Origin: Chrysemys picta bellii
Taxonomy: Eukaryota
Reading direction: 5' to 3'
DNA: 64,000 bases
NCBI RefSeq assembly: GCF_011386835.1
Contig: NC_088807.1
Span: forward strand, 24,614,001-24,678,000
Every line of letters begins with the position of its first letter. Position 1 is the stretch's first letter. The notes beneath the pieces were generated by a model. It made no database searches, was not told where the DNA came from, and was given only the letters and a program-made list of their open reading frames with translations. The position numbers and the translations under genes were made by a program. This document shows, one piece after another, positions 13,562 through 61,075 of the stretch.

Positions 13562-15917
13562 ATGGACCCCTCGGTGACGCTCTGGCAGTTCCTGCTGCAG
13601 CTGCTGGAGCAGCAGACCAACGGGCACCTGATCGCCTGGACGTCGGGCGACGGCGAGTTCAAGCTGGTGGACGCCGAGGAGGTGGCCCGGCTCTGGGGGC
13701 TGCGCAAGAACAAAACCAACATGAACTACGACAAGCTCAGCCGTGCCCTGCGCTACTACTACGACAAGGTGACCCCGCCCCTGCCAGGACCCGGGCGTCT
13801 GGGCCCCGCCCTCCCCGAGCCGGGAGAGAACCCAGGAGTCCGGGCTCCCAGCCCCCCCCCACTCTCATCACTAGCCCCCACTCCCCTCCCAGAGCCGGGA
13901 GAGAACCCAGGAGTCCTGGCTCCCAGCCCCCCCTGCTCTAACCACTAGACCCCATTCCCCTCCCCGAGCCGGGGAGAGAACCCAGGAGTCCTGGCTCCCA
14001 GCCCCCCCTGCTCTAACCACTGGTCCCCACTCCCCTCCCAGAGCTGGGGAGAGAACCCAGGAGTCCTGGCTCCCAGCCCCCCCTGCTCTAACCACTGGCC
14101 CCCACTCCCCTCCCAGAGCTGGGGAGAGAACCCAGGAGTCCTGGTTCCAACCCCCCCCCACTCTATCCTCTCTCTTTCCAGAACATCATCCGGAAGGTCA
14201 ACGGGCAGAAGTTCGTCTATAAATTCGTCTCGTACCCGGAGCCAGCCGGCGCGGAGGGGGCCCGGGAGGAAGGGATGCTCCGGCGGGTGGAACCGGCCCT
14301 GACCGAGTCCCGGCTGGGGGAGGGGAGCTCCGGGCCCCCCAAGTCCCTGCGTGGGGGGAGCGTCCCCCGGAGTAGCCGTAATGAGTACATGCGCTCGGGT
14401 CTGTACTCCACTTTCACCATCCAGTCGCTGCAGGCGGCCCCCCCAGGGCGAGCGCCCCGCCAGGATCCCCCAGCCCTCTGCAGCGAGCCCCTGGACCCCT
14501 CCGACCTGGCCCCCGGGAAGATGGAGGAGATTCCCCAGCTGGAGATCAGCATTGAAGAAGCAGACGAGAGCGAACCACTGCAGGTGAGGTGGCCCTGTCG
14601 CCCCACCCCAGAGGTGGCTGCATCTCAGCGCCGGGCGAGCCGTCCCCGGGCGGCGTCACGTGCGGCTGTTTCGCAGCTGCCCCGCCCCAGCACTGGCCGC
14701 ATTTCTCCCTCTTGCCCCCAGGTCTTTGTGGCGCCGGAGCCCCTGGATGCAGAGCGCCCCCCCCCAGAGGCGACGCCTCCGCGGGACCCCGGGCTGCGGC
14801 CGGTGGTGGTGAAAGTGGAGGCGGAGCGGGAGACGGAGGGGTCCCCGCTCCTGGTCCTGATCGACGCGGGGGTGAAGCAGGAAGCGCCTCCTGCCGAAGA
14901 GGCCCCCAGGGGGACGGAGGCGGAGCTCCTGGCGGGGGAGGGGCCTCAGGAGGAGAAGGGGGAGGGGGTGTCTGGGGGCGCCCCCAGCGAGGGGCACGGC
15001 CCGAAGGGGCGGAAGCCCAAGGACCTGGCGCTGCCCTCCCTGCCCGGGCAGGAGAAGATCAGCGCAGCCGGTAGCTCCCTGCTGGCGCCCGGCGGGGGAG
15101 CGGGCAGCGGGCTGACGCCAACCACCGTGATCTCCACACACGCACTAGTGAGTGGCTATGGGGCGGGGGCGGGGGAGGGGGCATGGGATCTGTGGGGGAG
15201 GTGCCTGGGGCCTAGGGGGAGGGATCTGTGGGTGGGGGAGCGGCCTGGGTGTGTGGGGAAGGATCTGAGGGTGGAGAAGGGGCCTGGGTGTGGGGGGAGG
15301 GATCTGTGGGTGGGGGCGGGGCTTGTGGTGGGGGTGGGGGCTGCAGGGTCTGGGGGATTGGAGGTAGGGAAGGGGTCCTTGGGTGGAAGGGGTTGTGGGG
15401 AGGGAGCTGGGGTTGGACGGGGGATGGGGTCTCTCTCTCTCACTCTCACCGCCCCCCTCTCCTGTGCAGACCCCCGTCCTGCTGACCCCCAGCTCCCTGC
15501 CACCCACCATCCACTTCTGGAGCACCCTGAGCCCCATCGCCCCACACAGCCCCGCCAAGCTCTCCTTCCAGGTATGCAGCGGGAGTGAGGGGCACCGGCA
15601 GGGCTCGGGGGGGGAGGGGGGGAGCCCATGGCTGGGCTAGTGGGGGACTGCAGGTCGGGAGTGAGGGGCACCGGCAGGGCTGGACTGGCACGGGGCTGCG
15701 GGTCGGGAGTGAGGGGCACCGGCAGGGCTGGGGGGAGCCCAGGGCTGGGCTAGCAGGGGGCTGTGGGTCGGGAGTGAGGGCTATGGTCAGTGGGTCACTC
15801 CCCCACCTCTCCCCACAGTTTCCTTCTAACTCTGGTGGGCAAATTCACATCCCCTCGCTGAGCGTGGACGGACTCTCCACTCCGGTCGTGCTGTCCCCGG
15901 GGCCCCAGAAGCCGTGA
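13562..15917 (+). CDS. ELK1: ETS transcription factor ELK1, complete CDS (about 411 aa); exons 13562-13768, 14182-14583, 14722-15147, 15470-15571, 15819-15917
   Basis: ETS domain [15 protein letters not shown]...[21 protein letters not shown]|[21 protein letters not shown]-box [20 protein letters not shown]-domain [12 protein letters not shown]-domain [34 protein letters not shown]|FP...[10 protein letters not shown]. All introns GT-AG, phase 0. Confidence 0.97.
13800..14160. repeat. About 67-bp minisatellite (GAGAACCCAGGAGTCCTGGCTCCCAG family) in ELK1 intron
   Basis: 5 tandem copies. Confidence 0.9.
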
Positions 15918-19800: not shown

Positions 19801-20083
19801 CGGCAGCCTCCAGCGGCTCCATCACCTCATCCCTTGGTCCTGGGCGGGGGGGGGTCCCACTTCCCTTCCCCCCTCCCCCGGCGCCTGGCTGCAACAACTC
19901 CGTGGCGAGGCCTTGGGAAAGACGCGCCTTTGTGCTACTTCTGTGTGTGTGTGTGGGTACAGATGGGGCAGCTCCCCCTTGACACCCCAAATATAGGCCG
20001 GGGGGGGGTGCGTGGAGGCAGGGTTTGGGGCAGTGATGTCCCCCCGCCCCTTCCAAATTTTTGCATGTGTCTCCTGCCCGGGT

Positions 20084-21956
20084 TCAGGGCTGCCAAAGGC
20101 ATGTCTTGGAGGTGTCGATGTGGGAGGCTGTCGGGGGGTCTCCCTCCGCCTCTCCCAGGCTGAAGGGGGGGGGATAGAGCTCGCCGAGCAGGAGGGCGGC
20201 CGGGGACTGTCGGTAAGGCTTGAGGGCAGCCCGGCAGCCCAGTTCCCGCAGCCACCGGCCGGCGTAGCAGGCCAGCATCACCGCGCACAGGGCCACCAGC
20301 AGCGAGCCCGTCATGGCCGCCAGGGCCACGCCCCCCGGCCCCCGCCCGGCCAGCCCCAGCCCCGCCGTGGTCACGTTCAGGCAGGCCCGCTGCGTGCCTG
20401 GGGACGCCGGAGCAGAGGCAGTTGCGAGGGAGAAGTCCTCGGTCGCTCGGGAGGATGCCGGGATTGCCGTGGCGGATACGGTTGCTAAGGAAGATGCAGC
20501 AGTTGCCAGAGAGGATCCGGTTGCTAGGGAGGCGGCGGTTGCTAGGGAGGAGGTGGTTGCTGCGGAGAAGGATCCGGTTGCTAGGGAGGCGGCGGTTGCT
20601 GTGGAGAAGGATGCGGTTGCTAGGGAGGCCGGTGCGCCGGAGGATGCTGTTGCTATGGCGGAGGGCGTTGCCGCGGTGGCCGGGGTGGGCGTCTCCGTGG
20701 CCACCAGGCTCAAGCAGATCTCGTAGTGCGTGGCCGGCTGCAGGTGCGTCAGGTTGACCTGCCGGTAGTCCAGCGGCACCTGGGCCGTGTAGCTGAGGTG
20801 GGGGCTGTGGATGTGCACGGTGGCCGAGGTCCAGTGGGGGCCGGGGGGCTAGCGAGGCTCTGGGGGGGGCCCATGGAGACCAGTCCCCCCCAGTCCACTC
20901 CACCACCACAAAATGGGACTGGACCTTCTTCGTGAGCAAGGCTGGACCGCCCCTGCCGCCCCCCTTCCCCCCTGGCCTCCCCGCCGCGCCCCCCAGCACC
21001 TCCAGCATCAGGGCGCGGCTGGCCGAGCCCGCCTCGTTCCGCGCCACGCAGGTGTACTGCCCGGCATGGGCCGGTCCCACCCCGACCAGCTCCAGGCCCC
21101 CCCGGCCTGTCCCGAGCCGGCCAGCCTCTCCCCGGCCGGCCCCAGCCAGGAGATCTCCGGGGGTGGCTCGGCGCTGGCCGGGCAGCTCAGGGTCACGGAG
21201 CCGCCGGGCGCCACCACCAGCCTCTCAGGCCAGCCCCGAGGGGGGAACGCCGGGGGGCAGCCCCGGCTCCCGCTGCCCTGCAGCCCCGCCCGCAGCTCCC
21301 CGATGGGGTTCTCATTCAGGTCCCGGAACCTGAGCTGGGGCAGGCGGCGCAGGGCGGGCGCCGGCACCCGGGCCAGCCGGTTGCGGAAGAGCGAGAGGCT
21401 CTCCAGCCCCTGGAAGGCCTCGGCCGGTAGGTCCCGCAGCCCCAGGCCGGCCAGGCCCAAGCTCTGCAGCCGCCCCAGGGGCCGGAAGCCGCCCGCCTCC
21501 AGCCGGGCGATGGGGTTCTCGCCGAGCATGAGGATCTCCAGGCGGGTCAGGGGCAGGGGCGGGAACCAGCCGGGGTCCACAGCCCGCAGCCGGTTGGCGT
21601 TGAGGTGCAGCCGCAGCAGCCGGGCCAGGCCGGTGAAGGCCGAGCAGGCGATGGAGACCAGGCGGTTGTGATTCAGGTACAACTCCTCCAACGCCGCCAG
21701 CCCCCGCAGGCAGCCCGCGGGCAGCTCCTCCGGCCGGTTCTCCTCCAGGTAGAGGGTGAGGAGGCGGGGCAGGCCGGCGGGGGGCAGGCGGGGCAGGCCG
21801 GCGGGGGGCAGGCGGGGCAGGCCGGCGGGGGACAGGTGGGGCCAGGCCGGCGGGGGGCAGGCTGCCGGGCGGTTCTGGGACAGGTCCAGCTCGGTCTGGC
21901 TGGGCAGGCGCCGGAGCTCGCCGGAGAGCCGGGCGATCTGGTTGCCCCGGGGGCAT
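20084..21956 (-). pseudogene. Leucine-rich repeat neuronal protein 1-like (LRR-Ig-FN3-TM), degenerate or frameshifted
   Basis: LRRs TELDLSQN...LTLYLEEN...LEELYLNHN...LRLHLNAN...LEILMLGEN...LESLSLFRN; Ig VTLSCPASAEPPPEISW...YTCVARN; FN3 SPHLSYTAQVPLDYRQVNLTHLQPATHYEICL...ACLNVTT; TM ALAAMTGSLLVALCAVMLACYA; tail LGELYPPPFSL...HIDTSK resembles LRRN1 LNELYPPLINL...QVDTSR. Two frameshifts (near 21100 and about 20840-20890), internal LRR/LRRCT deletion, no signal peptide found. Confidence 0.8.
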
Positions 21957-22029
21957 CTGGGAAAGAGGGAGGGGGACATCTATGGACACCGGCATGGAGA
22001 GCCCCCCCACAGCGCTCCACGGGAGACTG

Positions 22030-22460
22030 CCCCCTGCCCAGCCCCCCTGCCGCACCCCCTGGCCTGCTCCCCGCCCCCCAGCTCCCCGCAGTGCCCAGCC
22101 CTGACTGCCAGAGGAGAGTCCCCTGCCCAGCCCCCTGACCCTGCCCCACAGCGCCCCCTAGTGCCCAGCTCTGACTACCAGGGGAGGGCGCCCCCTGCCC
22201 AGCCCCTGACCCTCCTCCCCGCCCCACGGCGCCCCCCAGCATCCAGCCCTGCCTGCCAGGGGAGAGACCCGTGCTGAGCCCCCTGCCCCTGCCCCACAGC
22301 GCCCCCTAGTGCCCAGCCCTGCCTGCTAGGGGAGAGCAACCCCTGCCCAGTCTCCCACTCAGCCCCTCGCCCCACGGCACCCCCCAGTGCCCAGCCCTGC
22401 CTGCCAGGGGAGAGCCCCATGCTGAGCCCCCTGCCCCGCGGTGCCCCCCAGCGCCCAGCC
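22030..22460. repeat. C-rich minisatellite (CCCAGCCCTGACTGCCAGGGGAGAG family) replacing the expected LRRN 5' coding region
   Basis: Reverse complement of the 7620-8395 unit, about 7 copies. Confidence 0.8.
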
Positions 22461-23299: not shown

Positions 23300-23640
23300 G
23301 AGGGGGGGCTGGGAGCCAGGACTCCTGGGTTCTCTCCCCGGCTCTGGGAGGGGAGTGGGGGCTCGTGGTTAGAGCAGGGGAGCTGGGAGCCAGGACTCCT
23401 GGGTTCTCTCCCGGCTCAGGGAGGGGAGTGGGGGCTGGTGGTTAGAGCAGGAGGGCTGGGAGCCAGGACTCCTGGGTTCTCTCCCGGCTCTGGGAGGGGA
23501 GTGGGGGCTGGTGGTTAGAGCAGGAGGGCTGGGAGCCAGGACTCCTGGGTTCTCTCCCGGCTCTGGGAGGGGAGTGGGGGCTGGTGGTTAGAGCAGGGGG
23601 GGCTGGGAGCCAGGACTCCTGGGTTCTCTCCCCAGCTCAG
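23300..23640. repeat. About 65-bp minisatellite (reverse of the GAGAACCCAGGAGTCC family)
   Basis: 5 copies of GGGAGCCAGGACTCCTGGGTTCTCTCCC. Confidence 0.9.
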
Positions 23641-24034
23641 GGAGGGGGGCGGGGGGGAGCAGCTCTACTGAGGGTGGGGGTGGGAATCTCACACCCACAT
23701 TTGCCTGGTTTCCTGTTCCAGGGTCTGACAGTTGGAAGCAGGAGGCTCATGAATATTGATGAGGCTCTTGAATAATTGAGCCAGTTCCCAGAAGCCCCTG
23801 CTCTGGGCTGACCCCATTGCTGATGCTGCCTCCGCACACTCTGGGCGGGGGGGGGGGGCTGAGAAACAAGGGCGCAGGCCTGGGTGTGCTCGGGGGGCCC
23901 TTGCTGGATACCTGGTGTGTGGGCTCCCGGCGGGCCCCAGGGCAGGGACTGGCTGGCTCGGGGGGGAGGTGGGGACTGGGGCACTGGCTCCCTTCTGGCC
24001 CCAGGACGTGGGGCACCGGGCCTGTCCCCTCTAG

Positions 24035-26670
24035 GGGACAGATGGATGGGGCAATGGGGGATAGATGGGGTGTAGGGGGACAGATGGATGGGGCATAGGG
24101 GATAGATGGGGTGTATACAGATGGATGGGGCATGGGGGATAGATGGGGTGTAGGGGGACAGATGGATGGGGCATAGGGGGATAGATGGGGTGTAGGGGGA
24201 CAGATGGATGAGGCAATGGGGGATAGATGGGGTGTAGGAGGACAGATGGATGGGGCAATGGGGGATAGATGGGGTGTAGGGGGACAGATGGATGAGGCAA
24301 TGGGGGATAGATGGGGTGTAGGAGGACAGATGGATGGGGCATGGGGGATAGATGGGGTGTAGGGGGACGGATGGGGCATGGGGGATAGATGGGGTGTAGG
24401 GGGACAGATGGATGGGGCAATGGGGGATAGATGGCGTGTAGGGGGACAGATGGATGGGGCATAGGGGGTAGATGGGGTGTAGGAGGACAGATGGATGGGG
24501 CATGGGGGATAGATGGGGTGTATACAGATGGATGGGGCAATGGGGGATAGATGGGGTGTAGGGGGACAGATGGATGGGGCATGGGGGATAGATGGGGTGT
24601 ATACAGATGGATGGGGCAATGGGGGATAGATGGGGTGTAGGGGGACAGATGGATGGGGCAATGGGGGATAGATGAGGTGTAGGGGGACAGATGGATGGGG
24701 CAATGGGGGATAGATGGGGTGTAGGGGGACAGATGGATGGGGCAATGGGGGATAGATGGGGTGTATACAGATGGATGGGGCATGGGGGATAGATGGGGTG
24801 TAGGGGGACAGATGGATGGGGCATGGGGGATAGATGGGGTGTAGGGGACAGATGGATGGGGCAATGGGGGATAGATGGGGTGTAGGGGGACAGATGGATG
24901 GGGCATGGGGGATAGATGGGGTGTATACAGATGGATGGGGCAATGGGGGATAGATGGGGTGTAGGGGGACAGATGGATGGGGCAATGGGGGATAGATGGG
25001 GTGTAGGGGGACAGATGGATGGGGCATGGGGGATAGATGGGGTGTATACAGATGGATGGGGCATAGGGGGATAGATGGGGCGTAGGGGGACAGATGGATG
25101 GGGCATAGGGGGATAGATGGGGCGTAGGGGGACAGATGGATGGGGCAATGGGGGATAGATGGGGTGTAGGGGGACAGATGGATGGGGCATGGGGGATAGA
25201 TGGGGTGTAGGAGGACAGATGGATGGGGCAATGGGGGATAGATGGGGTGTAGGAGGACAGATGGATGGGGCAATGGGGGATAGATGGGGTGTAGGGGGAC
25301 AGATGGATGGGGCAATGGGGGATAGATGGGGTGTAGGGGGACAGATGGATGGGGCAATGGGGGATAGATGGGGTGTAGGGGGACAGATGGATGGGGCAAT
25401 GGGGGATAGATGGGGTGTAGGGGGACAGATGGATGGGGATTGGGGATAGATGGGGTGTAGGGGGACAGATGGATGGGGCATGGGGGATAGATGGGGTGTA
25501 GGGGTGTGACGAACTGGGACTGTTCTTACTGTGGTCTGTGAATGCTGACAGGGGAGTGTGGCTAGGATAGTCTGCATTGGAGGATGGGAGTCTGCCCGAA
25601 GGCGAATACCTGAGCGTGTAACATGAGAACCCAGGAAGGGGTTGAAGGCCAGGTGACACCTTGGCCCGGGAAACTGAACAAAGGCTGTGGGAGGGGTCGC
25701 TGAAGGCAGAGTGTTGGAAGCGGGCTGGAGAGAGGCCTGGGAGGCAGAGATGGCTCTGACCCCCCCCCAAAGGGGGGTGGGCTGGGATGCCCTGGGACCC
25801 CAAGCTGGACTTAACTGAGGGGGTCCTGTTGTCTGTGCCTGCAAGACCTGTCTTGGACTGTATTCCTGTCATCCAAATAAACCTTCTGCTTTACTGGCTG
25901 GCTGAGAGTCATGGTGAATCGCAGGAGGCCGGGGGTGCAGGGCCCTGAGTCCCCCAATACTCCGTGACAAGGGGGACCGATGGATGGGGCATAGGGGGAT
26001 AGATGGGGTGTAGGGGGACAGATGGATGGGGCAATGGGGGATAGATGGGGTGTAGGGGGACAGATGGATGGGGCATGGGGGATAGATGGGGTGTATACAG
26101 ATGGATGGGGCAATGGGGGATAGATGGGGTGTAGGGGGACAGATGGATGGGGCAATGGGGGATAGATGGGGTGTAGGGGGACAGATGGATGGGGCATGGG
26201 GGATAGATGGGGTGTAGGGGGACAGATGGATGGGGCATGGGGGATAGATGGGGTGTATACAGATGGATGGGGCAATGGGGGATAGATGGGGTGTAGGGGA
26301 CAGATGGATGGGGCAATGGGGAATAGATGGGGTGTAGGGGACAGATGGATGGGGCAATGGGGGATAGATGGGGTGTAGGAGGACAGATGGATGGGGCATA
26401 GGGGGATAGATGGGGTGTAGGGGGACAGATGGATGGGGCAATGGGGGATAGATGGGGTGTAGGGGGACAGATGGATGGGGCATGGGGGATAGATGGGGTG
26501 TATACAGATGGATGGGGCAATGGGGGATAGATGGGGTGTAGGGGGACAGATGGATGGGGCAATGGGGGATAGATGGGGTGTAGGAGTACAGATGGATGGG
26601 GCATGGGGGATAGATGGGGTGTAGGGGGACAGATGGATGGGGCATGGGGGATAGATGGGGTGTATGCAGA
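24035..26670. repeat. About 41-bp minisatellite (GGGGGATAGATGGGGTGTAGGGGGACAGATGGATGGGGCAAT), interrupted by a solo LTR
   Basis: About 50 copies over 24035-25504 and 25970-26670. Confidence 0.95.
25505..25969 (+). mobile_element. Solo LTR (465 bp) of an LTR retroelement
   Basis: TGTGACG...CGTGACA termini (TG..CA, short inverted ends), AATAAA at 25876, 5-bp TSD AGGGG (25500-25504 / 25970-25974). A closely related copy lies at 62952-63425. Confidence 0.92.
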
Positions 26671-27839: not shown

Positions 27840-30112
27840 TGGGGATGGAGGGATAGATAGAGGGTGTGTTTGGGGATAGATAGATAGATAGATCAATGGG
27901 ATTATTAGGATGGATGGATGGATGGATGGATGGATGGGTAGACACATGGGGTAGATGGGGATGGATGGATGGTTGGGTTAGCAGGTAGGTAGATAGAGAG
28001 GGGGGTTGGGATGGATGGATGGGTAGGTAGATGTGGAGATGGGGATGGATGGATGGATGGGATTAGCAGGTAGGTAGATAGAGAAATGGATGGATGGGCA
28101 GGTAGATGGGGAGATGGGGATGGATGGGTGGGTAGGTAGATGGGGATGGATGGGTGGGATTAGCAGGTAGGTAAATAGATAGAGAGGGGGGTTGGGATGG
28201 ATGGATGGATGGGTAGGTAGATGGGGATGGATGGATAGATGGGGTTAGCAGGTAGGTAGATAGAGAGGGGGGTTTAGGATGGATGGGTGGGTAGGTAGAT
28301 GGGGATGGATGGATAGATGGGGTTAGCAGGTAGGTAGATAGAGAGGGGGGTTGGGATGGATGGATGGGTAGGTAGATGGGGATGGATGGATGGATAGATG
28401 GGGTTAGCAGGTAGGTAGGTAGATAGAGAGGGGGGTTGGGATGGATGGATGGGTAGGTAGATGGGGATGGATGGATAGATGGGGTTAGCAGGTAGGTAGA
28501 TAGAGAGGGGGGGTTGGGATGGATGGGTGGGTAGGTAGATGGGGATGGATGGATAGATGGGGTTAGCAGGTAGGTAGATAGAGAGGGGGGTTGGGATGGA
28601 TGGGTAGGTAGATGGGGATGGATGGATGGATGGATGGGGTTAGCAGGTAGGTAGATAGAGAGGGGGGTTTGGGATGGATGGATGGGTAGGTAGATGGGGA
28701 GATGGGGATGGATGGGTGGGTAGGTAGATGGGGATGGATGGATAGATGAGGTTAGCAGGTAGGTAGATGGATAGAGATGGGGGTTGGGATGGATGGATGG
28801 ATGGGTAGGTAGATGGGGATGGATGGATAGATGGCGTTAGCAGGTAGGTAGATAGATAGAGGGGGGGTTGGGATGGATGGATGGGTAGGTAGATATGGAT
28901 GGATGGATGGGTGGGGTTAGCAGGTAGGTAGATAGAGAGGGGGGTTTGGGATGGATGGATGGGTAGGTAGATGGGGAGATGGGGATGGATGGGTGGGTAG
29001 GTAGATGGGGATGGATGGATAGATGGGGTTAGCAGGTAGGTAGATAGAGAGGGGGGTTGGGATGGATGGATGGATGGATGGGTAGGTAGATGGGGATGGA
29101 TGGATGGATAGATGGGGTTAGCAGGTAGGTAGGTAGATAGAGAGGGGGGTTGGGATGGATGGATGGGTAGGTAGATGGGGATGGATGGGTGGGGTTAGCA
29201 GGTAGGTAGATAGAGAGGGGGGTTTGGGATGGATGGGTGGGTAGGTAGATGGGGATGGATGGATAGATGGGGTTAGCAGGTAGGTAGATAGAGAGGGGGT
29301 TTGGGATGGATGGATGGGTAGGTAGATGGGGATGGATGGATGGATGGGGTTAGCAGGTAGGTAGATAGAGAGGGGGGTTTGGGATGGATAGATGGGTAGG
29401 TAGATGGGGAGATGGGGATGGATGGGTGGGTAGGTAGATGGGGATGGATGGATAGATGAGGTTAGCAGGTAGGTAGATGGATAGAGACGGGGGTTGGGAT
29501 GGATGGATAGATGGGGTTAGCAGGTAGGTAGATAGATAGAGGGGGGGGTTGGGATGGATGGATGGGTAGGTAGATGGGGATGGATGGATGGATGGGGTTA
29601 GCAGGTAGGTAGATAGAGAGGGGGGTTTGGGATGGATGGATGGGTAGGTAGATGGGGAGATGGGGATGGATGGATAGATGGGGTTAGCAGGTAGGTAGAT
29701 GGGGATGGATGGATGGATGGGGTTAGCAGGTAGGTAGATAGAGAGGGGGGTTTGGGATGGATGGATGGGTAGGTAGATGGGGAGATGGGGATGGATGGGT
29801 GGGTAGGTAGATGGGGATGGATGGATAGATGGGGTTAGCAGGTAGATAGATAGAGAGGGGGGTTGGGATGGATGGATGGATGGATGGGTAGGTAGATGGG
29901 GTAGATGGGGATGGATGGATGGGTGGGTTAGCAGGATAGGTAGATAGAGAGGGGGGTTGGGATGGATGGATGGATGGGTAGGTAGATGGGGTAGATGGGG
30001 ATGGATGGATGGGTGGGTTAGCAGGATAGGTAGATAGAGAGGGGGGTTGGGATGGATGGATGGATGGGTAGGTAGATGGGGTAGATGGGGATGGATGGAT
30101 GGGTGGGTTAGC
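27840..30112. repeat. Compound (GGAT)n/(AGAT)n minisatellite of about 60-80 bp period
   Basis: Unit GGATGGATAGATGGGGTTAGCAGGTAGGTAGATAGAGAGGGGGGTTGGGAT repeated over 2.3 kb; almost no C on the + strand. Confidence 0.95.
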
Positions 30113-33865: not shown

Positions 33866-35114
33866 AGAAGTTAAACTATGGCAGGAATGTGCCTTTTCCC
33901 CAGGCCGTGTGCAGTGTATATTGGAGAAGGGGTACAAGAAATGCGAACCAAACATGTGACTCCAAAGGGAGCCACCATCGGTTGGGTTTTCGTTTTCAGC
34001 TCGCTGGGTGTTTTGGAAGCAGGAATTGAACTCGAACCTCGGGTGGAAGTTGCTCATGTCCCATTTAAGGCCGAGTCTCTGAGCTCTGCTGAGGGCTTTG
34101 GCCCCAACAGCAGGCCAGAAAGTGTCTGTGTGGATGCAAATTACCTAAGTGAGGAAGGAAGGAGAGAACGGCCCAGAAACAGATAATGAACAGACCTGGT
34201 CAGCAAACAAACGACCTGAAAGCCAAAGGCTCAAATTATGACCCTCTAAAGGAAGGTGGGAAAAGGAGTCAAATCTAAGACAGGTTAAATAAAAAAATCG
34301 ATACTTTTGTGTGTGTGTCTGCCGGGCTGAAAGCTGAAGACAGGTTACATGCCGGACACCCCATCTTTTAATTCACCCAACCCCCAAGGATATAATTCAA
34401 TTAAAGCCCGTGCAAAGATTTCAAAAGAACAACGAACACACTGACCTCAAACCAGACGGTCTAACTAAAAGACATGGCATAACAAGAGACTTGGAATAGA
34501 GCTGATGTTAATATTAAACCCCGGGCTACATTTCATGTTAATAAGCACCCCTGTAACAATGCCTAGTGTGTATGATTTGGGGGAAAACGCCTTTAAGGTC
34601 AGAGGGTAATAACGCTTCTCAGCTATTGCCGGTGAATAAACTTAAAGCTGAGCACAGCAGAGAAAACATTACAAACTCGGTCTGCTGTATAAGAAGGGAA
34701 ACTGAGGCATGCCACCGTGTGAATTTAATAACTGAGAAGTGAGATAATTGCAACCTGGCCAGCCTATAGAACGGCCACACAGGGAAGTATGGGGTTAATG
34801 TCTCTGTTCTGCCTGCAATCAGCAAGGGTGTTTGTAACAGGAAGGGATATTTGAAGCAGTAATCTGCCACCCCCAAAGGGGTAGAAACGGGCTGTTGGGC
34901 TTTCAGAAAATCAGGAAAAGCCGGTACCAGCGGCCGAGCCACCCAGAATAGCACGAATCCACTGTCCCCACAGCGATGGTGTTTGGTGGTTTGTCTTGTT
35001 GCCAGGGGACTGGCGGAGGCCCGGCTCCCCGCCCTCCTGTGCGGTTTCAGCTCTCACTGGGACTGACCGAGCGGCACTAAGGACTGGGAACCTTAAGATC
35101 CAGCTGCAAAACCT

Positions 35115-35712
35115 TTTGGGGTGTGTGTGGGTGTGTGAGGTGTGTGTGTGTGCGGGTGTGTGGCTGTGTGTGGGTGTGGGGTGTCTGGGGTGGGTGTGTC
35201 TGTGCGCGGGTGTGGGGTGTGCGGGGGGTGTGTGAGGTGTGTGCGTGCGCGGGTGTGGGTGTGTGGCTGTGTGTGTGGGTGTGTGGGGTCGGTGTGTCTG
35301 TGTGTGGGTGTGGGGTGTGGGTGTGTCTGTGTGCGGGTGTGGGTGTGCAGGGGGGTGGGGGTGGGGTGTGAGGTGTGTGTGTGTGCACGCAAGGGTGTGG
35401 GTGTGTGGCTGTGTGTGGGTGTGAGGTGTCTGGGGTGGGTTTGGGTGTGTGGCTGGGTATGGGTGTGGGGTGTGCGGGGTGGGGTGGGTGTGAGGTGTCG
35501 TGTGTGCGCGACGCGCGGGTGTGGGTGTGGCTGTGTGGCTGTGTGTGTGGTGGTGTGGTGTGTGGCCGGGTGTGGGGTGTGGGGTGTGCGGGGGGGTGGG
35601 AGTGGGTGGGGGTCTGTGGCTGTGTGTGCGTGTGGGTGTGCGGGGTGGGTGTGGTGGCTGTGTGTGCATGTGGGTGTGCGGGGTGGGTGTGTCTGTGTGT
35701 GGTTGTGGGGTG
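35115..35712. repeat. (GT)/(GGGT)-rich simple repeat (mirror 61190-61802)
   Basis: Alternating GT tract. Confidence 0.9.
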
Positions 35713-35769
35713 TTGCCTCTCCCCTTTAAAAGATTCCGGATGCTTCTTATAAACACAACAACCGTGATA

Positions 35770-36200
35770 CCTATGTTCCACCAGTCACATCCCCCCGGCG
35801 CCTACGTTCCACCAATCACGTGCCCCCCGGCGCCTACGTTCCACCAATCACTCCCCCCGGCGCCTACGTTCCACCAAACACGTCCCCACGGGACCTATCT
35901 TCCACCAATCACGTCCCTGCGCTGCCTACGTTCCACAATCACGTCCCTGCGGTGCCTACCTTCCACCAATCACGTCCCCACGGACCTATCTTCCACCAAC
36001 CACGTCCCCCCGGCGCCTATGTTCCACCAACCACGTCCCCCCGGCGCCTATGTTCCAGCAATCACGTCACCCCGAGGCGCCTACGTTCCACCAATCACGT
36101 CCCCGCAGTGCGTATGTTCCACCAATCACGTCTCCCCGGCGCCTACGTGCCACCAATCACGTCCCCCTGGTGCCTACGTTCCACCAATCACGTCCCCGCC
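35770..36200. repeat. 30-31 bp tandem repeat containing CCAATCACGT (14 units; mirror 60520-61075 has about 18)
   Basis: Unit CGCCTACGTTCCACCAATCACGTCCCCCCGG; 8 of 14 units have an intact CCAAT. Confidence 0.9.
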
Positions 36201-36413
36201 GCCACGCCGCCTCGGTGGCTGACCGCGCCTCGCTCCGTTGCGGTGACTTTCCCGGGGCATCGCCCCCGTCGGCTGGTGCAGGGGTCCCCGATCTCGCTGG
36301 GACCAGTCGCCTCGCAGGGCGCCCTCGACCAGGCCTGCGTGCGAGGAGAAAAAAAAGTGTCTCTTCTTCCCCCCCATGCGGCTCGGGGGCCGCCCGGCGC
36401 CGTCCGGGTGCTG

Positions 36414-36535
36414 CAGGGTGACCAGATGTCCCGATTTTATAGGGACAGTCCCGGTTTTGGGGGCTTTTTCTTATATAGGCTCCTATTACCCCCACCCCCG
36501 TCCTGATTTTTCACATTTGCTGTCTGGTCACCCTA
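36414..36535. mobile_element. hAT-type MITE (122 bp)
   Basis: TIRs CAGGGTGACCAGA / TCTGGTCACCCTA with a perfect 8-bp TSD GGGTGCTG (36406-36413, 36536-36543). An 8-bp TSD is diagnostic of hAT. Confidence 0.9.
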
Positions 36536-38472
36536 GGGTGCTGGGTGCAGATGACGTCGCTGCTCCCCGGGACGGTGCCCGAGGCGGGGAAGTGGTTGGC
36601 CATAAACAGGCCTGGTGGAGCTGGATTAAGCTCCGGTCTCTTGGGCTTGGCCCTCCGCCCGCTTCCTTGTTTGCTCTGCTCAGGCGCTTGGCTCCTCGGC
36701 TGCTGACGCAAGGGTTTGGTTTCCCTGGAAGCCGGGGTCCTTCCTCGTTCCCGCTCACAGGCCGCCCTGTCCCCGCCGTGCCCTTGGCCGGCAGGTTTCG
36801 AGGCTGAGGTCCGGGGTGCAGCTATGCGGCCCCCGTCCCCACCCCGGTTCTGGTTCCTTCTCACCTGCCCCACCGACCGGGCGGCGCTCATCTCCGAAAC
36901 GGCTTCCCTGGGGGACCCCGTCCGCATTGGCCCAATGGCCTCCTGGAGATGGGGGGGCATCGGAGGGGCACCCCCCCAGTCCTGCTGGTGCCCCTCACTC
37001 CCGACCCGCAGCCCCTGCTAGCCCAGCCCTGCCCTGCCCCCCCAGCCCTGCTGGTACCCCTCACTCCCGACCCACAACCCCTGCTAGCCCAGCCCTGCCC
37101 TGCCCCCCCAGCCCTGCTGGTGCCCCTCACTCCCGACCCGCAGCCCCTGCCAGCCCGGCCCTGGGCTCCCCGCATGACAATCAGGGTCCAGACACCCCAA
37201 AGGGAGAACAGGGGGTGGCAGACACTGGTGATGGACGTTCCCACCCGTTGCGCCCGGTCTCTCACGGGCGCACGGGCCACTCGGCGCTTGCCGGCCCCCA
37301 CGGGGGGCGGGGGGAGCTGTGGCCTCTCCCCACGTCGCCAGGTGGGGCTGATTGTTGCACGGAGCACCCAGCACCACCCAGCCTAGCGCCGGGCCCTGCT
37401 GGTGCCAGGCGAGCCGCGGGGCAGGCCAGGCCCCCTCTCGCTGAGGGGCGCGGGGGCCGCCACTCTGAGCCCCGGGCACTGAGCCGGGCGAAGCCGGAGG
37501 TTGGGGCTTTGGGACGTTACGTCCGCGGTGGGTCCCCTGCCCGCTCTCGCCTGGGCCCCTCTGGTTTCTTCTAGTCCGTGTGCCGGTTGTTTGGTTTGCC
37601 CCTGGGGCCAGTCCCAGCGGCTGGAGGGTGGGGGCCACGGTGAGCTGATAACGGGGGTGGGTTTTGCTCCTTGGGGGGTGATGGACTGGAGGGGGGAAGC
37701 CGGAGTGCCCAGCAGTTACAAATATGGGGGGGAAGATGGGGGGGGGGTCCTGCACACCAGGGGGAAGGCAGATGGGGAGGGCCCTGCATGGTGGGGGAGA
37801 GGCAGATGGGGGGGCTCCGCACGGTGGGGGGGGGAGGTAGATGGGGGCGCTCTGCATGGCGGGGGGGAGGCAGATGGGGGGCCCTGCACGCTGGGAGAGA
37901 GGCAGATGGGGGTGCTCTGCATGGTGGGGGGAGGCAGATTGGGGGAACTTCTGTGCGCTCCGAGCCACAGTGGGGCAGCACCAAATCTCCCCCCCCAAGT
38001 TACAAGGTGGGGGGGTTTAGGCCCCCCCACATTGCTGGTGATCTCCGAGACCTCCCCGTGCGGAGGTGGCTGGGGGCGGAGGACACCCCCCCACACACAC
38101 TCCCCCGCTGGGCACCCAGGCCCGGCCGGCCCCTCGCGGAGGCCAGAGCCAGGGACCAAAAGTCCAAGGTCCCGGCTGGCTGAGGGGAGGGGCCCTCGGC
38201 CGTGGGGTGGGGGGGGATGGGGGTCCCCCCCCGCACTACCCCCCAGGGAGCTGGAAGGAGACGGCCCAGGGCTGGGGAGGCTCAGGGTCCCCCCAAACCC
38301 ACTGTTCCCCTCCCCCTTGCAGAGCAAATGCCAGGGGGAAGTCCTGCGGGGGGGGGGGGAGTGGCTGATGGGAATTTCCTCCCCCCGCCCCACCCCCGCG
38401 GCTCAGTCGCTCTCTGTCGAGCTTCTGTGCAGCCGCTGTCTGTCCGTCCGTCTGTCCGTCCGCGCCAGCCCC

Positions 38473-41400
38473 ATGGAGGGGGCCGTGACCTTTGGCCTCT
38501 TGCTGGCCTTGTGCTGGGCCCTGGGCCCATTTGCAGGTACTGGGGCGGGGGGGGGGGGTTGTGTGTCTGAGCCGAGTGGGCCCCCCCCAGTCTGTCTGTC
38601 TGTCTGTCCCTCCGGCTGGTCTCACCCCCGACTCCCCCCGCAGATGCCCAGGAGGGACTTTGCTACGAGGACTTCGGGGCCGGCAAGTGCAAGTTGTTCC
38701 TGGGGGAGGACGTGTCCCAGGAGGACTGCTGCCAGAACCCAACTACGGGTACCGGCCCCGCGCCGGGGCGCCCTGCCAGTCCTGCCGGTGAGTGCCCCCC
38801 AGAGCCCCCCCACTGCTGCCAGAACCCCAACTACGGGTACCGGCCCCGCGCCGGGGCGCCCTGCCAGTCCTGCCGGTGAGTGCCCCCCCCCGAGCCCCCC
38901 CACTGCTGCCGGAACCCCAACTACGGGTACCGGCCCCGCGCCGGGGCGCCCTGCCAGTCCTGCCGGTGAGTGCCCCCCAGAGCCCCCCCACTGCTGCCAG
39001 AACCCCAACTACGGGTACCGGCCCCGCGCCGGGGCGCCCTGCCAGTCCTGCGGTGAGTGCCCCCCCCAGAGCCCCCCCACTGCTGCCAGAACCCCAACTA
39101 CGGGTACCGGCCCCGCGCCGGGGCGCCCTGCCAGTCCTGCCGGTGAGTGCCCCCCCAGAGCCCCCCCACTGCGGCCAGAACCCCAACTACGGGTACCGGC
39201 CCCGCGCCGGGGCGCCCTGCCAGTCCCGCCGGTGAGTGCCCCCCCAGAACCCCCCCACTGCTGCCAGAACCCCAACTACGGGTACCGGCCCCGCGCCGGG
39301 GCGCCCTGCCAGTCCTGCCGGTGAGTGCCCCCCCAGAGCCCCCCCACTGCTGCCAGAACCCCAACTACGGGTACCGGCCCCGCGCCGGGGCGCCCTGCCA
39401 GTCCTGCCGGTGAGTGCCCCCCCCGAGCCCCCCCACTGCTGCCAGAACCCCAACTCTACGGGTACCGGCCCCGCGCTGGGGCGCCCTGCCAGTCCTGCCG
39501 GTGAGTGCCCCCCCAGAGCCCCCCCACTGCTGCCAGAACCCCAACTACGGGTACCGGCCCCGCGCCGGGGCGCCCTGCCAGTCCTGCCGGTGAGTGCCCC
39601 CCCAGAGCCCCCCCACTGCTGCCAGAACCCCAACTACGGGTACCGGCCCCCGCGCCGGGGCGCCCTGCCAGTCCTGCCGGTGAGTGCCCCCCCAGGAGCC
39701 CCCCCACTGCTGCCAGAACCCCAACTACGGGTACCGGCCCCGCGCCGGGGCGCCCTGCCAGTCCTGCCGGTGAGTGCCCCCCCAGAGCCCCCCCACTGCT
39801 GCCAGAACCCCAACTACGGGTACCGGCCCCGCGCCGGGGGCGCCCTGCCAGTCCTGCCCTCGCCCAGCCCCCCCTGAGGCCTGTGCCGTCCCCGCAGCCA
39901 GGCCGAGTGGAGCGACTGGACGCCGTGGAGCCCCTGCTCCGTGTCCTGCGGGGAGGGGGTGCAGAGACGCAGCCAGACCTGCCTGGGGCAGGGCCAGTGC
40001 TCGGGGGGCCCGCGAAGAAGTGGGAGATACAAGCCTGCAGCCTGCAGGATTGCTGCCCGGGTGAGTTCCCCCCGCCCCCCCTCCGGCAGCGCCCCCCCCA
40101 CAGTCAGTGCCCCACAGTGCCCCCCCACGGCCAGTGCCCCCTGTGCCCCACAGCACCCCCCCCCACGGCCAGTTACCCCCTGTGCCCCACAGCGACTCCC
40201 CCAGGGCTAGTGACCTCCTGTGCCCCACAGCGTCCCCCCCATGGCCAGTGCCCAACAGCGCCCCCCCCCACAGTCAGTGCCCCACAGCACCCCCCACGGC
40301 CAGTGCCCCACAGCGCCCCCCACGGTGCCCCCCCATGGCCAGTGCCAACAGCGCCCCCCCCACAGTCAGTGCCCCACAGCACCCCCCACCGCCAGTGCCC
40401 CACAGGGCCCCCCATGGTGCCCCCCCGTGGCCAGTGCCCCACAGCGCCCCCCACGGTCAGTGCTCCACAGCGCCCCCCCATGGCCAGTGCCCCACAGCGC
40501 CCCCCACGGTCAGTGCCCCCCTGTGCCCAACAGTGCCTCCCCCCACGGTCAGTGCCCCACAGCACCCCCCACGGCTAGTGCCCCCTGTACCCCACAGCAC
40601 CCCCGCACGGCCAGTTACCCCCTGTGCCCCACAGCGACCACCCCAGGGCTAGTGACCTCCTGTGCCCCACAGCGCCCCCCATGGCCAGTGCCCCCCTGTG
40701 CCCCACAGCGACCCCCTCAAGGGCCAGAGCCCCACGGCACCCCCCACAGCCAGTGCCCCCCGTGCCGCACAGCGCTCCCCCCGGGCTAGTGACCTCCTGT
40801 GCCCCACAGAGCCCCCCAGGACCAGTGCCCCACAGCGTCCCTCACGGCCAGTGCCCCCCATGCCATACAGAGTCCCTCACGGCCAGTGCCCCCTGTGCCC
40901 CACAGCGCCCCCCAGGGACAGTGATGCTCTGTGCCCCACAGAGCCCCCCAGGGCCAGTGCCCCATAGCACCCCCCACAGCTAGTACCCCCCTGTGCCCCA
41001 CAGTGCCCCCCACAGCCAGTGACCCCCTGTGCCCCACTGAGCCCCCCTCCTGCAATGCCCCACAGCTCCCCCCACGGCCAGTGCCCCTCGTGCCCCACAG
41101 TGACCCCCCCAGGGCTAGTGACCTCCTGTGCCCCACATCGCCCCCCAGGACCAGGGCCCCACAGCATCCCCCACGGCCAGTGCCCCCTGTGCCCCACAGT
41201 GCCCCCTGCTGGAGACCTCCACCCCATGCAGACAGCACCCCACATCACCCAGCCGTGCACCCCACAGCGCCCCCCTAGGGCGAGTGGCCCTCTCTGCTCC
41301 ACAGCACCCCCTGGTGGGAGAGGCTGGGGCTGGCATAGCTGGGATTACCCCCAGGCTTCTCCCTCTCTCGCGCGGATTCAGCACTTTCACTTCCCTCCTA

Positions 41401-44400
41401 TGGGTGCTGGTTCCCCCCCCCGCCCCCACCCCCCGGATCTCCCCCCCCCACAGCTGGAAATGGAAACTTCCTGTTCCCAGCTGCTGGAGCTGCAGAGAGG
41501 CCCATGGCAGTGATGGGGGGCTGGGACGAGGGGTGACAGGGGAGGGGGAGGGGTTGTCACCCCCTATTGGAGCTGGGCTCTGAGGGGTGGGTGGGGGGCA
41601 GGAGGGGTCTCTGGGGAGGGGTGTGTAGGGGGAGGGGATCTCATGGGAAGGGCAGGTGGATGGGTGGTCTCAGGTGGGGAGGGGATCTCTGGAATGGGGA
41701 GGGAGCTGCCTCAGGTCCCCACCCCCACCCCAATCCGGTGCTGACCCCCTCCCCCCACCCCCCGCAGTGATGGGGGGCTGGTCGGCCTGGGGCCCCTGGA
41801 GCTCCTGCTCCGTGACGTGCGCCGAGGGGGTGAGGAAGCGCGTCCGAAGATGCACCGAGCCGGCGCCCATCTGCGGGGGCTCCTGCCCTGGCCCCGACTC
41901 GGACACAATGCCCTGTGACACCAACAAGATCTGCCCCAGTGAGTGTGTGTGTGTGGGGGGGGGGATGGGCCGGGGGGTGGGAGGGGGTGTAGTCCTTTTT
42001 TGACACCAGCCCACCTGATATCCTCCCAAGCCGGCTAGGGGAAGAGTGGCTCTGAACTCAACCAGGCCACATCCGAGAAGGAGACGTGCAGCATACGACG
42101 CCGAGGAAGGTGGGGTGGAATCAACGCGTAGCTACAAAGTGGGGACTAGGCGGTCGCACGGCTGAAAAGGATCTGGGGGTTTGAGCGGATCCCGAGTGGA
42201 ATAGGACTCTACAACGGGACGCGGCTGGGGGGAAGGCTAATCTCATTCTGGGTGTGTTAACGGGGGGGTCGCATGTGAGACACAGGACAGTCGTGGTCCC
42301 CGCCCCGGTCGGCACTGGGGGGCCCTGGTGGGGAGGACTGTGTCCGGCTCTGGGCGCCCTCCCGCATTAGAAAAGTTCGTGAACAAATTGGGGAGAGTCC
42401 AGAGCAGAGCAACCAAAAGGATCGAAGGTTTAGAAAACCCGACCTAGGAGGGACGGTTAAAAGAAACGGGGCACGTTTGGTCTGGAGAGAAGGAGACTGA
42501 GGGGGGACCTGAGAACAGTCTTTAGCTACCTCACGGGCTGTTCTAAAGAGGACACTGGTCAATTGTTCTCCGTGTCCGCTGAGAGAAGGACGAGACGTAA
42601 AGGGCTGAATCTACAGCCAGTGGGATGGAGGTTAGATATTGGGAGAAACTTTCTAACTCTCAGGGTCGCTCAGCTCCAGAATTGGCTTCCAAGGGGGCTG
42701 TGGGACCCCGTCATTGGAAGGTTTTAAGAAGAAGTTGGACAAACCCGTCAGGGATAGATTAGATTGACTTAGTCCTGCCTCTGCTCAGGGGGCTGGATTT
42801 GGTGACCTTCCGAGGTCCCTTCCAGCCCGACACATCTAGGATCTAATTCTATTCCATAGATGTTTTTATACTGCATTCATCCCGGAGTATCTGGTTGGGT
42901 GGGTAGGGGGATGGGTGGGGGACAGGATGGATGGCTGGGTAGGTGGATGGTTGGATGTGGGGGTGGGGGCAGGGATGGATGGTTGGGTGGTCGGATGGAT
43001 GGATGGGGAATGGGTTGTTGGGTGGAAGGATTAGTGGATAGGTGGATGGGGTTGGGTGGGTGCATACATGGGTGGGTGGTAAGGGATGGGTGGGTGGGGA
43101 GGATGGATTGTTGGGTGCTTGGACAGAAGGATTAAGGGGCGGGTTGAGGTGGGGAGGGGGATGGCTGGTTGGGTGGCTGGACGGATGGATAGGAATGGGT
43201 GGATGGATGGGTAGTTGGGTGGAGGGATGGGTTAGGGTAAGGGTGGGTGGATAGACAGCTGGATGGTGGGGAATTGTGGGGGCAGGGATGGATGGGTAGA
43301 TGGATGGATGGGCTAAAGGGTGGGTGGACACCTGGATGGGTGGGTGAGCAGACAGGGATGGTTGGGTGGATGATGTTGGGACCTTATCCACTCAGTTCCC
43401 AAGAACTCAGCTCAACGCCAAGCTCATCACGGAGGTTTCTCTCCTGGCACCCAGGGGCCCGACGCTGCGCTACTGAGGCTCACAGGTGCAGGGGGTGGGT
43501 CCAGGATGAACCATGCACCCAAAATACAAACACATTCACCAGCTGCTAAACACGTCCTCACACAGACGCCGCCCGCGCTCTCTGTTCTACATCCGCACAC
43601 ACACTCTGTGATCGGCTCCTTAGTTCCTGGGAGCCAATCTCTGGTCACACGTTCGCCATCCGCCTGCTGTTCCCTTATCTACTAACTACATATTTACAAG
43701 GCTGTTGGGAATTCAGGCTTTGTTACATTGTTTCGTGGCCTTGGTCAGAATAGACCTATAGCTGGGTGGGGAGTGACTGAGTGGACGGCTGGGTAGAGAT
43801 GGTCCAGTGGATGGATGCGGGTGGTGGATGGATGGTAAGTTGGATGGGGGGGATGGGTGGGCAGGGATAGATGAATGGTTGGGTGGATGGGGGAGCAGAG
43901 ATGGATGGGTGGGGGGGGTGCTTGAGTGGGGGGATGGATGGGAAGGGATGGTTGGGTAGTTGAATGGGGGGGATGGGTGGGAGGAGATGGTTGTGGGGGG
44001 ATGGGTGGGAAGGAATGGTTGGGTAGTTGAATGGGGGGATGGGTGGGAGGAGATGGTTGTGGGGGGATGGGTGGGAAGGAATGGTTGGGTAGCTGAATGG
44101 AGGATAGGTGGGAAGAGATGGTTGTGGGGGGAGGGGTGGGAAGGGATGGTTGGGTAGTCGTATGGGGGATGGGTGGGAAGGGATGAGTAGTTGAATGGGG
44201 GGATGGGTGGGAAAAGATGGTTGTGGGGGGATGGGTGGGAAGGGATGGTTGGGTAGTTGAATGGGGGGATGGGTGGGAAGGGATGGGTAGTTGAATGGGT
44301 GGATGGGGAGCAGAGATGGATGGGTGGGGGTGCTTGGGTGGGGAGATGGATGGAAAGGGATGGTTGGGTAGATGGTTGTGGGGGGGATGGGTGGGTGGGC

Positions 44401-46520: not shown

Positions 46521-47020
46521 NNNNNNNNNNNNNNNNNNNNNNNNNNNNNNNNNNNNNNNNNNNNNNNNNNNNNNNNNNNNNNNNNNNNNNNNNNNNNNNN
46601 NNNNNNNNNNNNNNNNNNNNNNNNNNNNNNNNNNNNNNNNNNNNNNNNNNNNNNNNNNNNNNNNNNNNNNNNNNNNNNNNNNNNNNNNNNNNNNNNNNNN
46701 NNNNNNNNNNNNNNNNNNNNNNNNNNNNNNNNNNNNNNNNNNNNNNNNNNNNNNNNNNNNNNNNNNNNNNNNNNNNNNNNNNNNNNNNNNNNNNNNNNNN
46801 NNNNNNNNNNNNNNNNNNNNNNNNNNNNNNNNNNNNNNNNNNNNNNNNNNNNNNNNNNNNNNNNNNNNNNNNNNNNNNNNNNNNNNNNNNNNNNNNNNNN
46901 NNNNNNNNNNNNNNNNNNNNNNNNNNNNNNNNNNNNNNNNNNNNNNNNNNNNNNNNNNNNNNNNNNNNNNNNNNNNNNNNNNNNNNNNNNNNNNNNNNNN
47001 NNNNNNNNNNNNNNNNNNNN
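46521..47020. other. Assembly gap (500 N) at the centre of the inverted duplication
   Basis: Run of N beginning 3 nt into CFP exon 7 of copy 1. Confidence 1.
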
Positions 47021-60186: not shown

Positions 60187-60308
60187 TAGGGTGACCAGAC
60201 AGCAAGTGTGAAAAATCAGGACGGGGGTGGGGGTAATAGGAGCCTATATAAGAAAAAGCCCCCAAAACCGGGACTGTCCCTATAAAATCGGGACATCTGG
60301 TCACCCTG
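60187..60308. mobile_element. hAT-type MITE (mirror copy)
   Basis: Same TIRs; TSD CAGCACCC at 60179-60186 and 60309-60316. Confidence 0.9.
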
Positions 60309-60519
60309 CAGCACCCGGACGGCGCCGGGCAGCCCCCGAGCCGCATGGGGGGGGAAGAAGAGGCACTTTTTTTTCTCCTCGCACGCAGGCCTGGTCGAGG
60401 GCGCCCTGCGAGGCGACTGGTCCCCGCGAGATCGGGGACCCCTGCACCAGCCGACGGGGGCGATGCCCCGGGAAAGTCACCGCAACAGAGCGAGGCGCGG
60501 TCAGCCACCGAGGCGGTGG

Positions 60520-61075
60520 CGGGGACGTGATTGGTGGAATGTAGGCGCCGCGGGGAAGTGATTGGTGGAACATAGGCACCAGGGGGACGTGATTGGTGGC
60601 ACGTAGGCGCCGGGGAGACGTGATTGGTGGAACATACGCACTGCGGGGACATGATTGGTGGAACGTAGGCGCCTTGGGTGACGTGATTGGTGGAACATAG
60701 GCGCCACGGGGACGTGATTGGTGGAACATAGGCGCCGGGGGGGACGTGGTTGGTGGAAGATAGGTCCCGTGGGGACGTGTTTGGTGGAAGGTAGGTCCCG
60801 TGGGGACGTGATTGGTGGAACGTAGGCGCCGCAGGGACGTGATTGGTGGAACGTAGGCGCCGGGGAGACGTGATTGGTGGAAGATAGGTCCCGTGGGGAT
60901 GTGTTTGGTGGAACGTAGGCGCCGTGGGGACGTGATTGGTGGAACATAGGCGCCGAGGGGCACGTGATTGGTGGAACGTAGGCGCCGGGGGGCACGTGAT
61001 TGGTGGAACGTAGGCGCCGGGGGGCACGTGATTGGTGGAACGTAGGCGCCGGGGGGATGTGACTGGTGGAACATA
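60520..61075. repeat. 31-bp CCAAT-containing tandem repeat (mirror, longer allele)
   Basis: GGGGACGTGATTGGTGGAACGTAGGCGCC units. Confidence 0.9.

Follow-up and report, generated by a model that had tools for sequence, protein, structure and literature searches.

A probable unitary pseudogene of Lrrn1b between ELK1 and CFP in the turtle Chrysemys picta bellii

Beside ELK1 in Chrysemys picta bellii lies an intronless minus-strand sequence that encodes leucine-rich repeats (LRRs), an immunoglobulin (Ig) domain, a fibronectin type III (FN3) domain and a transmembrane (TM) segment, in a frame that is broken twice. Is this a working gene obscured by sequencing errors, a recent copy of a relative, or the remains of a gene that died in place? 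We analysed the full 64,000-nt stretch of NC_088807.1 that holds it (the window; coordinates without another prefix are window positions). A first-pass annotation had proposed the sequence as a candidate, unrecognised fourth LRRN paralog, retained or decaying and possibly less broken than it appears. We conclude that the locus is very probably a unitary pseudogene, that is, a non-duplicated gene that decayed in place, of Lrrn1b (also NLRR-6, zfNLRR or si:ch211-180f4.1). The fourth LRRN paralog is already known; it is the long-described Lrrn1b/NLRR-6.

The three open reading frames (ORFs) given for the sequence were found as described, and together they run over 20084-21949 as LRRs, Ig, FN3, Ser/Thr/Ala stalk, TM segment and tail. 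The first ORF (21979..21008, minus strand) holds the LRRs (Pfam LRR_8, E 4.8e-30, in four stretches; ~7-8 repeats survive) and the first Ig half (Ig_3, E 1e-4). The first ~85 codons of the second ORF (21080..19935, minus strand) run from the second Ig half (GQYTCVARN; I-set, E 0.011) into the beginning of FN3, and the third ORF (20818..20084, minus strand) holds the end of FN3, an Ala/Ser/Thr-rich stalk, the TM segment and the tail ELYPP...IDTSKTCLWQP up to a stop codon at 20086-20084. The first and third ORFs share a frame modulo 3 and the middle piece is shifted, so the two breaks cancel. The Ig halves, which stand in different frames, both align with the Ig domain of the ortholog from the turtle Emydura macquarii; the frame-broken FN3 domain scores weakly in Pfam (fn3, E 0.19, C-terminal half) and aligns clearly with ortholog FN3 domains. 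The single-pass TM segment and the conserved short tail (YPP...; ...DTSKTY.W) are kept and align with Emydura, Xenopus and coelacanth. At 73% G+C, the region has long chance ORFs in all frames.

Family and position of the sequence

All matches of the 323-residue LRR/Ig piece in a word search were LRRN-type proteins. The locus's own NCBI model, 'LRRN1-like [Chrysemys picta bellii]' (P0001), was followed by 'LRRN1-like' proteins of Malaclemys and Gopherus, and the similarity to LRRN proteins was far above chance, with a frog and a fish (si:ch211-180f4.1) protein reaching 50-52% identity (~220 residues; E 1e-51 to 1e-62). Searches with frog and Emydura queries recovered a large group of 'LRRN1-like' proteins of ~710-860 residues from frogs, a salamander, a caecilian, coelacanth, lungfish, bichir, sturgeon, gar, bowfin, many teleosts, many squamates and a few turtles, including Xenopus laevis 'Neuronal leucine-rich repeat protein 6' and zebrafish si:ch211-180f4.1. 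The best 120 matches of the frog query contained no mammal, bird or crocodilian. The only mammal in the Emydura-query search was a true LRRN1 (mole, ~E 1e-188), which stood alongside frog LRRN1. A large representative search, dominated by giant multi-repeat proteins, yielded LRRN2, cyclostome and amphioxus sequences and one credible LRRN3. The search of solved-structure sequences did not discriminate families, with generic LRR proteins (IGFALS, LGR5, TLRs) matching the LRR/Ig piece and nothing matching the C-terminal piece.

The tree was built from 46 sequences by a quick IQ-TREE search (LG+C20+F+G4, 714 columns; supports are values of the SH-like approximate likelihood ratio test, SH-aLRT, from that quick search). 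Its input comprised 21 Lrrn1b-type sequences, five true LRRN1, seven LRRN2 (two birds included), two sequences named LRRN3, six cyclostome proteins, amphioxus and two invertebrate outgroups, with no shark; the window entered as three pieces with X at both breaks, and the separate pieces had served in the database searches. The window sequence fell in the clade of NLRR-6 and si:ch211-180f4.1 (SH-aLRT 100), within the turtles (100) and the hidden-necked turtles (100), beside Chelonoidis (90). True LRRN1 (99) and LRRN2 (99; mammal, bird and fish) formed clades of their own. LRRN1 (NLRR-1) shares the architecture and ~50% identity and is the source of the automatic locus name, and frogs carry both genes (Ascaphus P0159 versus P0030; Leptobrachium P0158 versus P0027). 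LRRN2 (NLRR-2/GAC1) and LRRN3 belong to the same family and have the same architecture. LRRN3 is represented in the tree by a single long-branched fish sequence, and the branching of the paralogs relative to one another and to the cyclostome genes is poorly supported. The other sequence named LRRN3 (P0160, 'LRRN3 isoform X2' of the pipefish Nerophis lumbriciformis) groups with Lrrn1b of ray-finned fishes, and its name is probably wrong. Long stem branches lead to the sauropsids (0.45 changes per site) and to the turtles (0.51).

Since the Lrrn1b clade contains both ray-finned and lobe-finned vertebrates, the gene predates the split between them. In the literature, zfNLRR (Bormann et al. 1999) and XlNLRR-6 (Wolfe and Henry 2006) represent a divergent Lrrn1-like gene, ~30 residues longer, which was named Lrrn1b by Andreae et al. 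2007 and ascribed to an early vertebrate duplication of Lrrn1 (PMC2225406). The zebrafish gene si:ch211-180f4.1 is taken to be the zfNLRR gene, by its matching length (744 aa) and its clade. Lrrn1b is reported absent from mammals and birds, mammals having only Lrrn1-3 (PMC2225406), which bears out the first-pass annotation's list of mammalian LRRN genes (LRRN1-3). Its proposal of a fourth LRRN paralog beside ELK1 holds in that the gene is ancient, distinct from LRRN1 and LRRN2 and located between CFP and ELK1, but the paralog was not unrecognised, having been described as zfNLRR, XlNLRR-6 and Lrrn1b and modelled by NCBI. An origin by whole-genome duplication, as an ohnolog of LRRN1/2/3 from the two early vertebrate rounds (2R), is plausible; the first-pass annotation took the regions of LRRN1-3 to be paralogous to the Xp11 block, and a literature search on these genes and whole-genome duplication had no hits.

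XlNLRR-6 (B7ZRX8) and zfNLRR share with the window gene their clade, their domain order and a single coding exon, and the Lrrn1b orthologs and the window copy have in common the motifs ...HSPHLSYTAQVP..., NLTHLQPAT.YEICL, YPP..SL and IDTSKT..WQP. The window copy differs from the fish and frog genes in being dead, without start codon, signal peptide, LRRNT, the last LRRs or LRRCT, and with two frame breaks. A stalk of ~100 residues rich in Ala, Ser and Thr is present in the window and other sauropsid orthologs and not in the fish and frog proteins; this repeat-built segment between FN3 and TM makes sauropsid Lrrn1b (P0039, P0132 and others) ~100 residues longer than its fish and frog counterparts.

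The chromosomal position points the same way as the tree. The remnant lies on the minus strand between ELK1 and CFP, both on the plus strand, and the order and orientation CFP, gene, Ets gene recur in the frog Spea bombifrons and in Malaclemys, where a TSP1_CFP_C gene adjoins the ortholog. The Ets gene is on the same side of the ortholog in Chrysemys and Natator. Next after the Emydura gene comes one of 424 residues that is colinear with ELK1 of the window, and beyond it lies a prefoldin-domain (UXT-like) gene. The neighbour of the gar gene within 10 kb (L004:19256-22232) is an OTU-domain gene rather than ELK1 or CFP, and the zebrafish and gecko orthologs have no called neighbour within 10 kb. 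Because frog and turtles share it, the location beside ELK1 is at least as old as the tetrapods.

Might the sequence be a recent retrocopy of LRRN1 that landed beside ELK1 by chance? Its lack of introns and the automatic name 'LRRN1-like' would fit such an origin. However, all LRRN genes have their coding region on one exon (PMC2225406); the orthologs of Emydura, gar, gecko, zebrafish and Spea are single-exon genes, and the remnant is colinear with the single-exon Emydura ORF. The sequence does not nest inside LRRN1 but falls outside the true LRRN1 clade, and its place between CFP and an Ets gene has been kept from frog to turtles. Taken together, these results leave a chance retrocopy with next to no probability and identify the sequence as Lrrn1b at its ancestral site.

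Lesions relative to an intact ortholog

As the yardstick for lesions we used the intact Emydura macquarii gene ('LRRN1-like', P0132, 844 aa), which has the same neighbours, stalk and tail as the window locus and ~69-82% DNA identity along it. In Emydura one uninterrupted exon of 844 codons is translated from the genome into exactly the annotated protein; the window copy, by contrast, is broken. Comparisons included a second Chrysemys assembly or haplotype (L001) and the Malaclemys locus (L003).

A tblastn search with P0132 left Emydura residues 1-67 and 268-397 without a match in the window. Residues 1-67 had no match in L001 either, and are retained in Malaclemys. Since the global DNA alignment was unreliable at its 5' end, where flanking DNA was set against coding sequence, the 5' lesion was mapped by blastn. 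Positions 1-110 of Malaclemys L003:29601-30150 correspond to window 22054-21944, and positions 409-500 to window 21945-21855, so that a clean deletion of ~298 bp took codons 1-67 (ATG, signal peptide, LRRNT and first LRR) as well as ~93 bp of the 5' flank. The start of the first ORF, 'MSPSLFPRCP' (21979-21950), is read-through of former upstream DNA. An apparent splice acceptor at ~21957 was rejected, as it is really the junction of this deletion with former upstream DNA.

The second large lesion, a 390-bp in-frame deletion, removed codons 268-397 with the last ~5 LRRs and LRRCT. Its junction sits between direct repeats GCTGCGGGxGGG and is identical in the window, in L001 and in Malaclemys. 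The two large deletions together amount to 688 bp relative to the Emydura locus. Since the orthologs have the LRRNT and LRRCT caps and the signal peptide, their absence from the window is secondary.

Several small lesions add to these. At Emydura codon 96 a 1-bp deletion immediately precedes an expanded 24-nt repeat. The Ig domain is interrupted by the loss of another base, at 21095 (codon 467): the window reads GCC-TGGAG where Emydura has GCCCTGGAG and L001 has GCCGTGGAG, the G at this site being present in L001 and the deletion thus absent there. An 8-bp deletion at 20842/20843 (codon 568), common to Malaclemys, splits the FN3 domain. L001 carries lesions of its own, namely a TAG in the first LRR that remains, a deletion of 10 bp at codon 491 and one of 38 bp that spans the 8-bp site, and Malaclemys lacks ~244 bp of LRRs and has further frame-breaking indels. 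The suggestion that the gene is less broken than it appears was thus reversed, as start codon, signal peptide, LRRNT, ~5 LRRs and LRRCT are gone.

We infer the following order of events. Lrrn1b, intact in fish, amphibians, squamates and side-necked turtles, would have lost its constraint in the Chrysemys lineage. The 390-bp deletion of C-terminal LRRs and cap would have occurred in the common ancestor of Chrysemys and Malaclemys, and Chrysemys would then have lost the 298 bp with start codon, signal peptide and N-terminal cap. Later still, small indels that break the frame and differ between haplotypes would have accumulated. From such a remnant a membrane-inserted LRRN protein cannot be made.

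Features of the Lrrn1b locus in the window, with strand and basis of each call
Feature	Position	Strand	Basis
Probable Lrrn1b/NLRR-6 pseudogene body	20084..21944	-	tblastn of Emydura P0132 (codons ~68-844 + stop 20086-20084); tree
Remaining LRRs, roughly LRR2-LRR8	21290..21949	-	Pfam LRR_8; Emydura alignment
24-nt tandem repeat x4.2, GLPRLPPA units, in LRR2/3 region	21762..21862	-	Tandem Repeats Finder; DNA alignment
Ig (C2/I-set) domain, split by 1-bp deletion at 21095	21010..21260	-	Pfam Ig_3 and I-set halves
FN3 domain, split by 8-bp deletion at 20842/20843	20720..20950	-	DNA alignment
Ala/Ser/Thr-rich stalk with 18/39-nt tandem repeat (20474-20629)	20400..20720	-	Tandem Repeats Finder; like Emydura P0132 and Anolis P0039
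TM helix (20329-20261, VALAAMTGSLLVALCAVMLACYA) and cytoplasmic tail (ELYPP...IDTSKTCLWQP)	20087..20329	-	translation; Emydura, Xenopus NLRR-6 and coelacanth tails
Junction of ~298-bp deletion	21944..21945	-	blastn; also in L001
Junction of 390-bp in-frame deletion (Emydura codons 268-397)	21286..21288	-	DNA alignments; last ~5 LRRs and LRRCT
ELK1 ETS domain (context, one side)	13580..13800	+	motif scan, ...MNYDKLSR
CFP (properdin) thrombospondin repeat (context, other side)	39908..40000	+	motif scan

Read contigs, haplotypes and selection

Are the frame breaks present in the animal, or are they assembly and polishing errors at homopolymer runs in an intact gene, as had been proposed? A G+C-rich region with many G and C runs invites such errors, the two small breaks cancel in frame, and one of the 1-bp deletions is missing from the second assembly. 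The read evidence, in the form of Logan contigs rather than raw reads, came from runs X1, X2, X8 and X14, of which X1 holds the locus best and X8 is a separate sample from a separate study. The X1 contigs show 0 differences to the window across both small breaks and both large junctions, including a contig over 21240-21791 that spans the 390-bp junction. At 21095 the window allele is carried with 0 differences by an X1 contig (20875-21163) and an X8 contig (21029-21287), and at the 8-bp deletion by a further X8 contig (20653-20941). Both small deletions are thus carried exactly by contigs of two samples and are not consensus errors. Nor does the placement of the breaks in homopolymers fully hold: they do cancel, but the 21095 loss adjoins a G7 run and is not inside it, and the 8-bp loss lies between two C runs and is no miscount. 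Moreover, the two large deletions occur in two assemblies and one of them has the same junction in another genus, L001 has its own stop codon and 10-bp and 38-bp deletions, and the substitutions look neutral. An intact gene behind these lesions is therefore very unlikely.

The substitution pattern was measured against Malaclemys over 376 alignable codons. The rate of nonsynonymous change (dN) was 0.095 and that of synonymous change (dS) 0.100, giving a ratio (omega) of 0.95, and the differences were spread over the three codon positions as 38/29/35; against Emydura omega was 0.52. In these alignments the pattern fits neutral drift since the emydid ancestor. Decay in this lineage, one of the two fates first proposed, is borne out by the mapped deletions and by the omega against Malaclemys. 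The window copy has no start codon, no continuous frame and no signature of purifying selection.

The second haplotype was also seen in reads. Window 20080-21960 and L001:25180-27014 differ by 55 substitutions in ~1.9 kb (~2.9%) and by different indels, an unusually high diversity in a 73% G+C stretch. L001-type substitutions at 21164, 21194, 21216, 21227 and 21239 are carried by a second X1 contig and by X2 contigs, and X2 is also L001-type at 20830, 20835 and 20874. Both haplotypes are thus real, and they seem to co-occur in one animal (sample X1). An X2 contig, in whose display two small indels are not shown, keeps the 8 nt lost from the window and has one extra base in the adjacent C run.

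Several points weigh against a dead gene. The 8 nt are present in the X2 haplotype, whose Ig-FN3 frame is defined only in part by the contig. The assembly may come from the same individual as X1. NCBI models the locus as protein-coding, with 318 aa across 16 kb, so that some transcript evidence may exist. The ORF of 323 codons is long for a dead gene, although this is largely explained by the scarcity of stop codons at 73% G+C. Finally, X8 and X14, whose label as RNA runs is a guess, have patchy contigs of low depth (2-5) on the remnant and its 3' flank, which could reflect transcription or contaminating DNA.

The last three of these points also speak for a remnant that is still transcribed and has a residual or new role, for example as a non-coding RNA or a truncated cytosolic LRR-Ig fragment such as the NCBI model. 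Such a fragment would, however, come from a sequence without a signal peptide or start codon of its own, whose substitutions look neutral and whose would-be ORF contains haplotype indels and, in L001, the TAG; and the contig coverage, apart from its guessed RNA label, is not only patchy but equal 3' of the stop codon. We regard a residual role as improbable and favour a pseudogene of Lrrn1b that has probably lost its function altogether.

Surroundings, other turtles and implications

The interval between the pseudogene and CFP is mostly filled by G-rich minisatellites at 22043-22437, 23303-23655, 24034-26664 and 28117-29998, with units of 70/148 nt, 73 nt, 42 nt (x64) and 78/155 nt, respectively; the first of these arrays starts just upstream of the remnant. 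Read depth in the minisatellites exceeds that of unique sequence by a factor of hundreds to thousands. An inverted duplication (33970-46520 / 50387-62952) with arms of ~12.5 kb and 90-98.6% identity surrounds an assembly gap at 46521-47020, and each arm holds CFP thrombospondin repeats (39908 on the plus strand, 56983 on the minus strand). Either a real palindrome or a falsely duplicated haplotype could account for it.

An ortholog between CFP and an Ets gene was what the first-pass annotation predicted for other vertebrates, and it is found in Spea and Malaclemys. Among turtles, Pelusios castaneus (P0139), like Emydura, looks intact at the protein level. In Natator the part from LRRNT to LRRCT is still present, but a cap cysteine is replaced (VDGDD), several LRR asparagines are lost, the frame is shifted several times and the tail contains a stop. 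The tortoises Chelonoidis and Gopherus have Ensembl-type models that, judged at the protein level, also look broken, with out-of-frame stretches and skipped parts. Gene models are irregular elsewhere too: the Malaclemys model P0010 translates long out-of-frame stretches, and P0001 (L001:10001-26120) borrows its start codon from a tiny upstream exon 15 kb away and ends inside the Ig domain.

Lrrn1b belongs, as its fourth member, to the LRRN family, whose single-exon genes encode neuronal transmembrane adhesion proteins of the LRR-Ig-FN3 type. It originated before the divergence of the bony vertebrates and lies between CFP and ELK1 in tetrapods. On balance we think it probable that the gene survived into sauropsids and was lost piecemeal, being intact in squamates and in the side-necked turtles Emydura and Pelusios and persisting in at least two families of hidden-necked turtles (Emydidae and Cheloniidae) as a pseudogene whose lesions are particular to each lineage. 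The loss of Lrrn1b was placed 'in the amniote lineage' in 2007, when reptile genomes were still awaited (PMC2225406); survival in sauropsids contradicts that suggestion and speaks against a single loss at the amniote base.

The public annotation of this locus as a protein-coding 'LRRN1-like' gene would accordingly change to a pseudogene. The finding brings no new mechanism and adds modestly to the evolutionary record of a neuronal adhesion family and the CFP-ELK1 (Xp11.23-type) block. If the piecemeal loss is real, Chrysemys still segregates two dead haplotypes that are ~3% divergent, and turtles offer a natural contrast between animals with and animals without a neuronal/lens adhesion gene.

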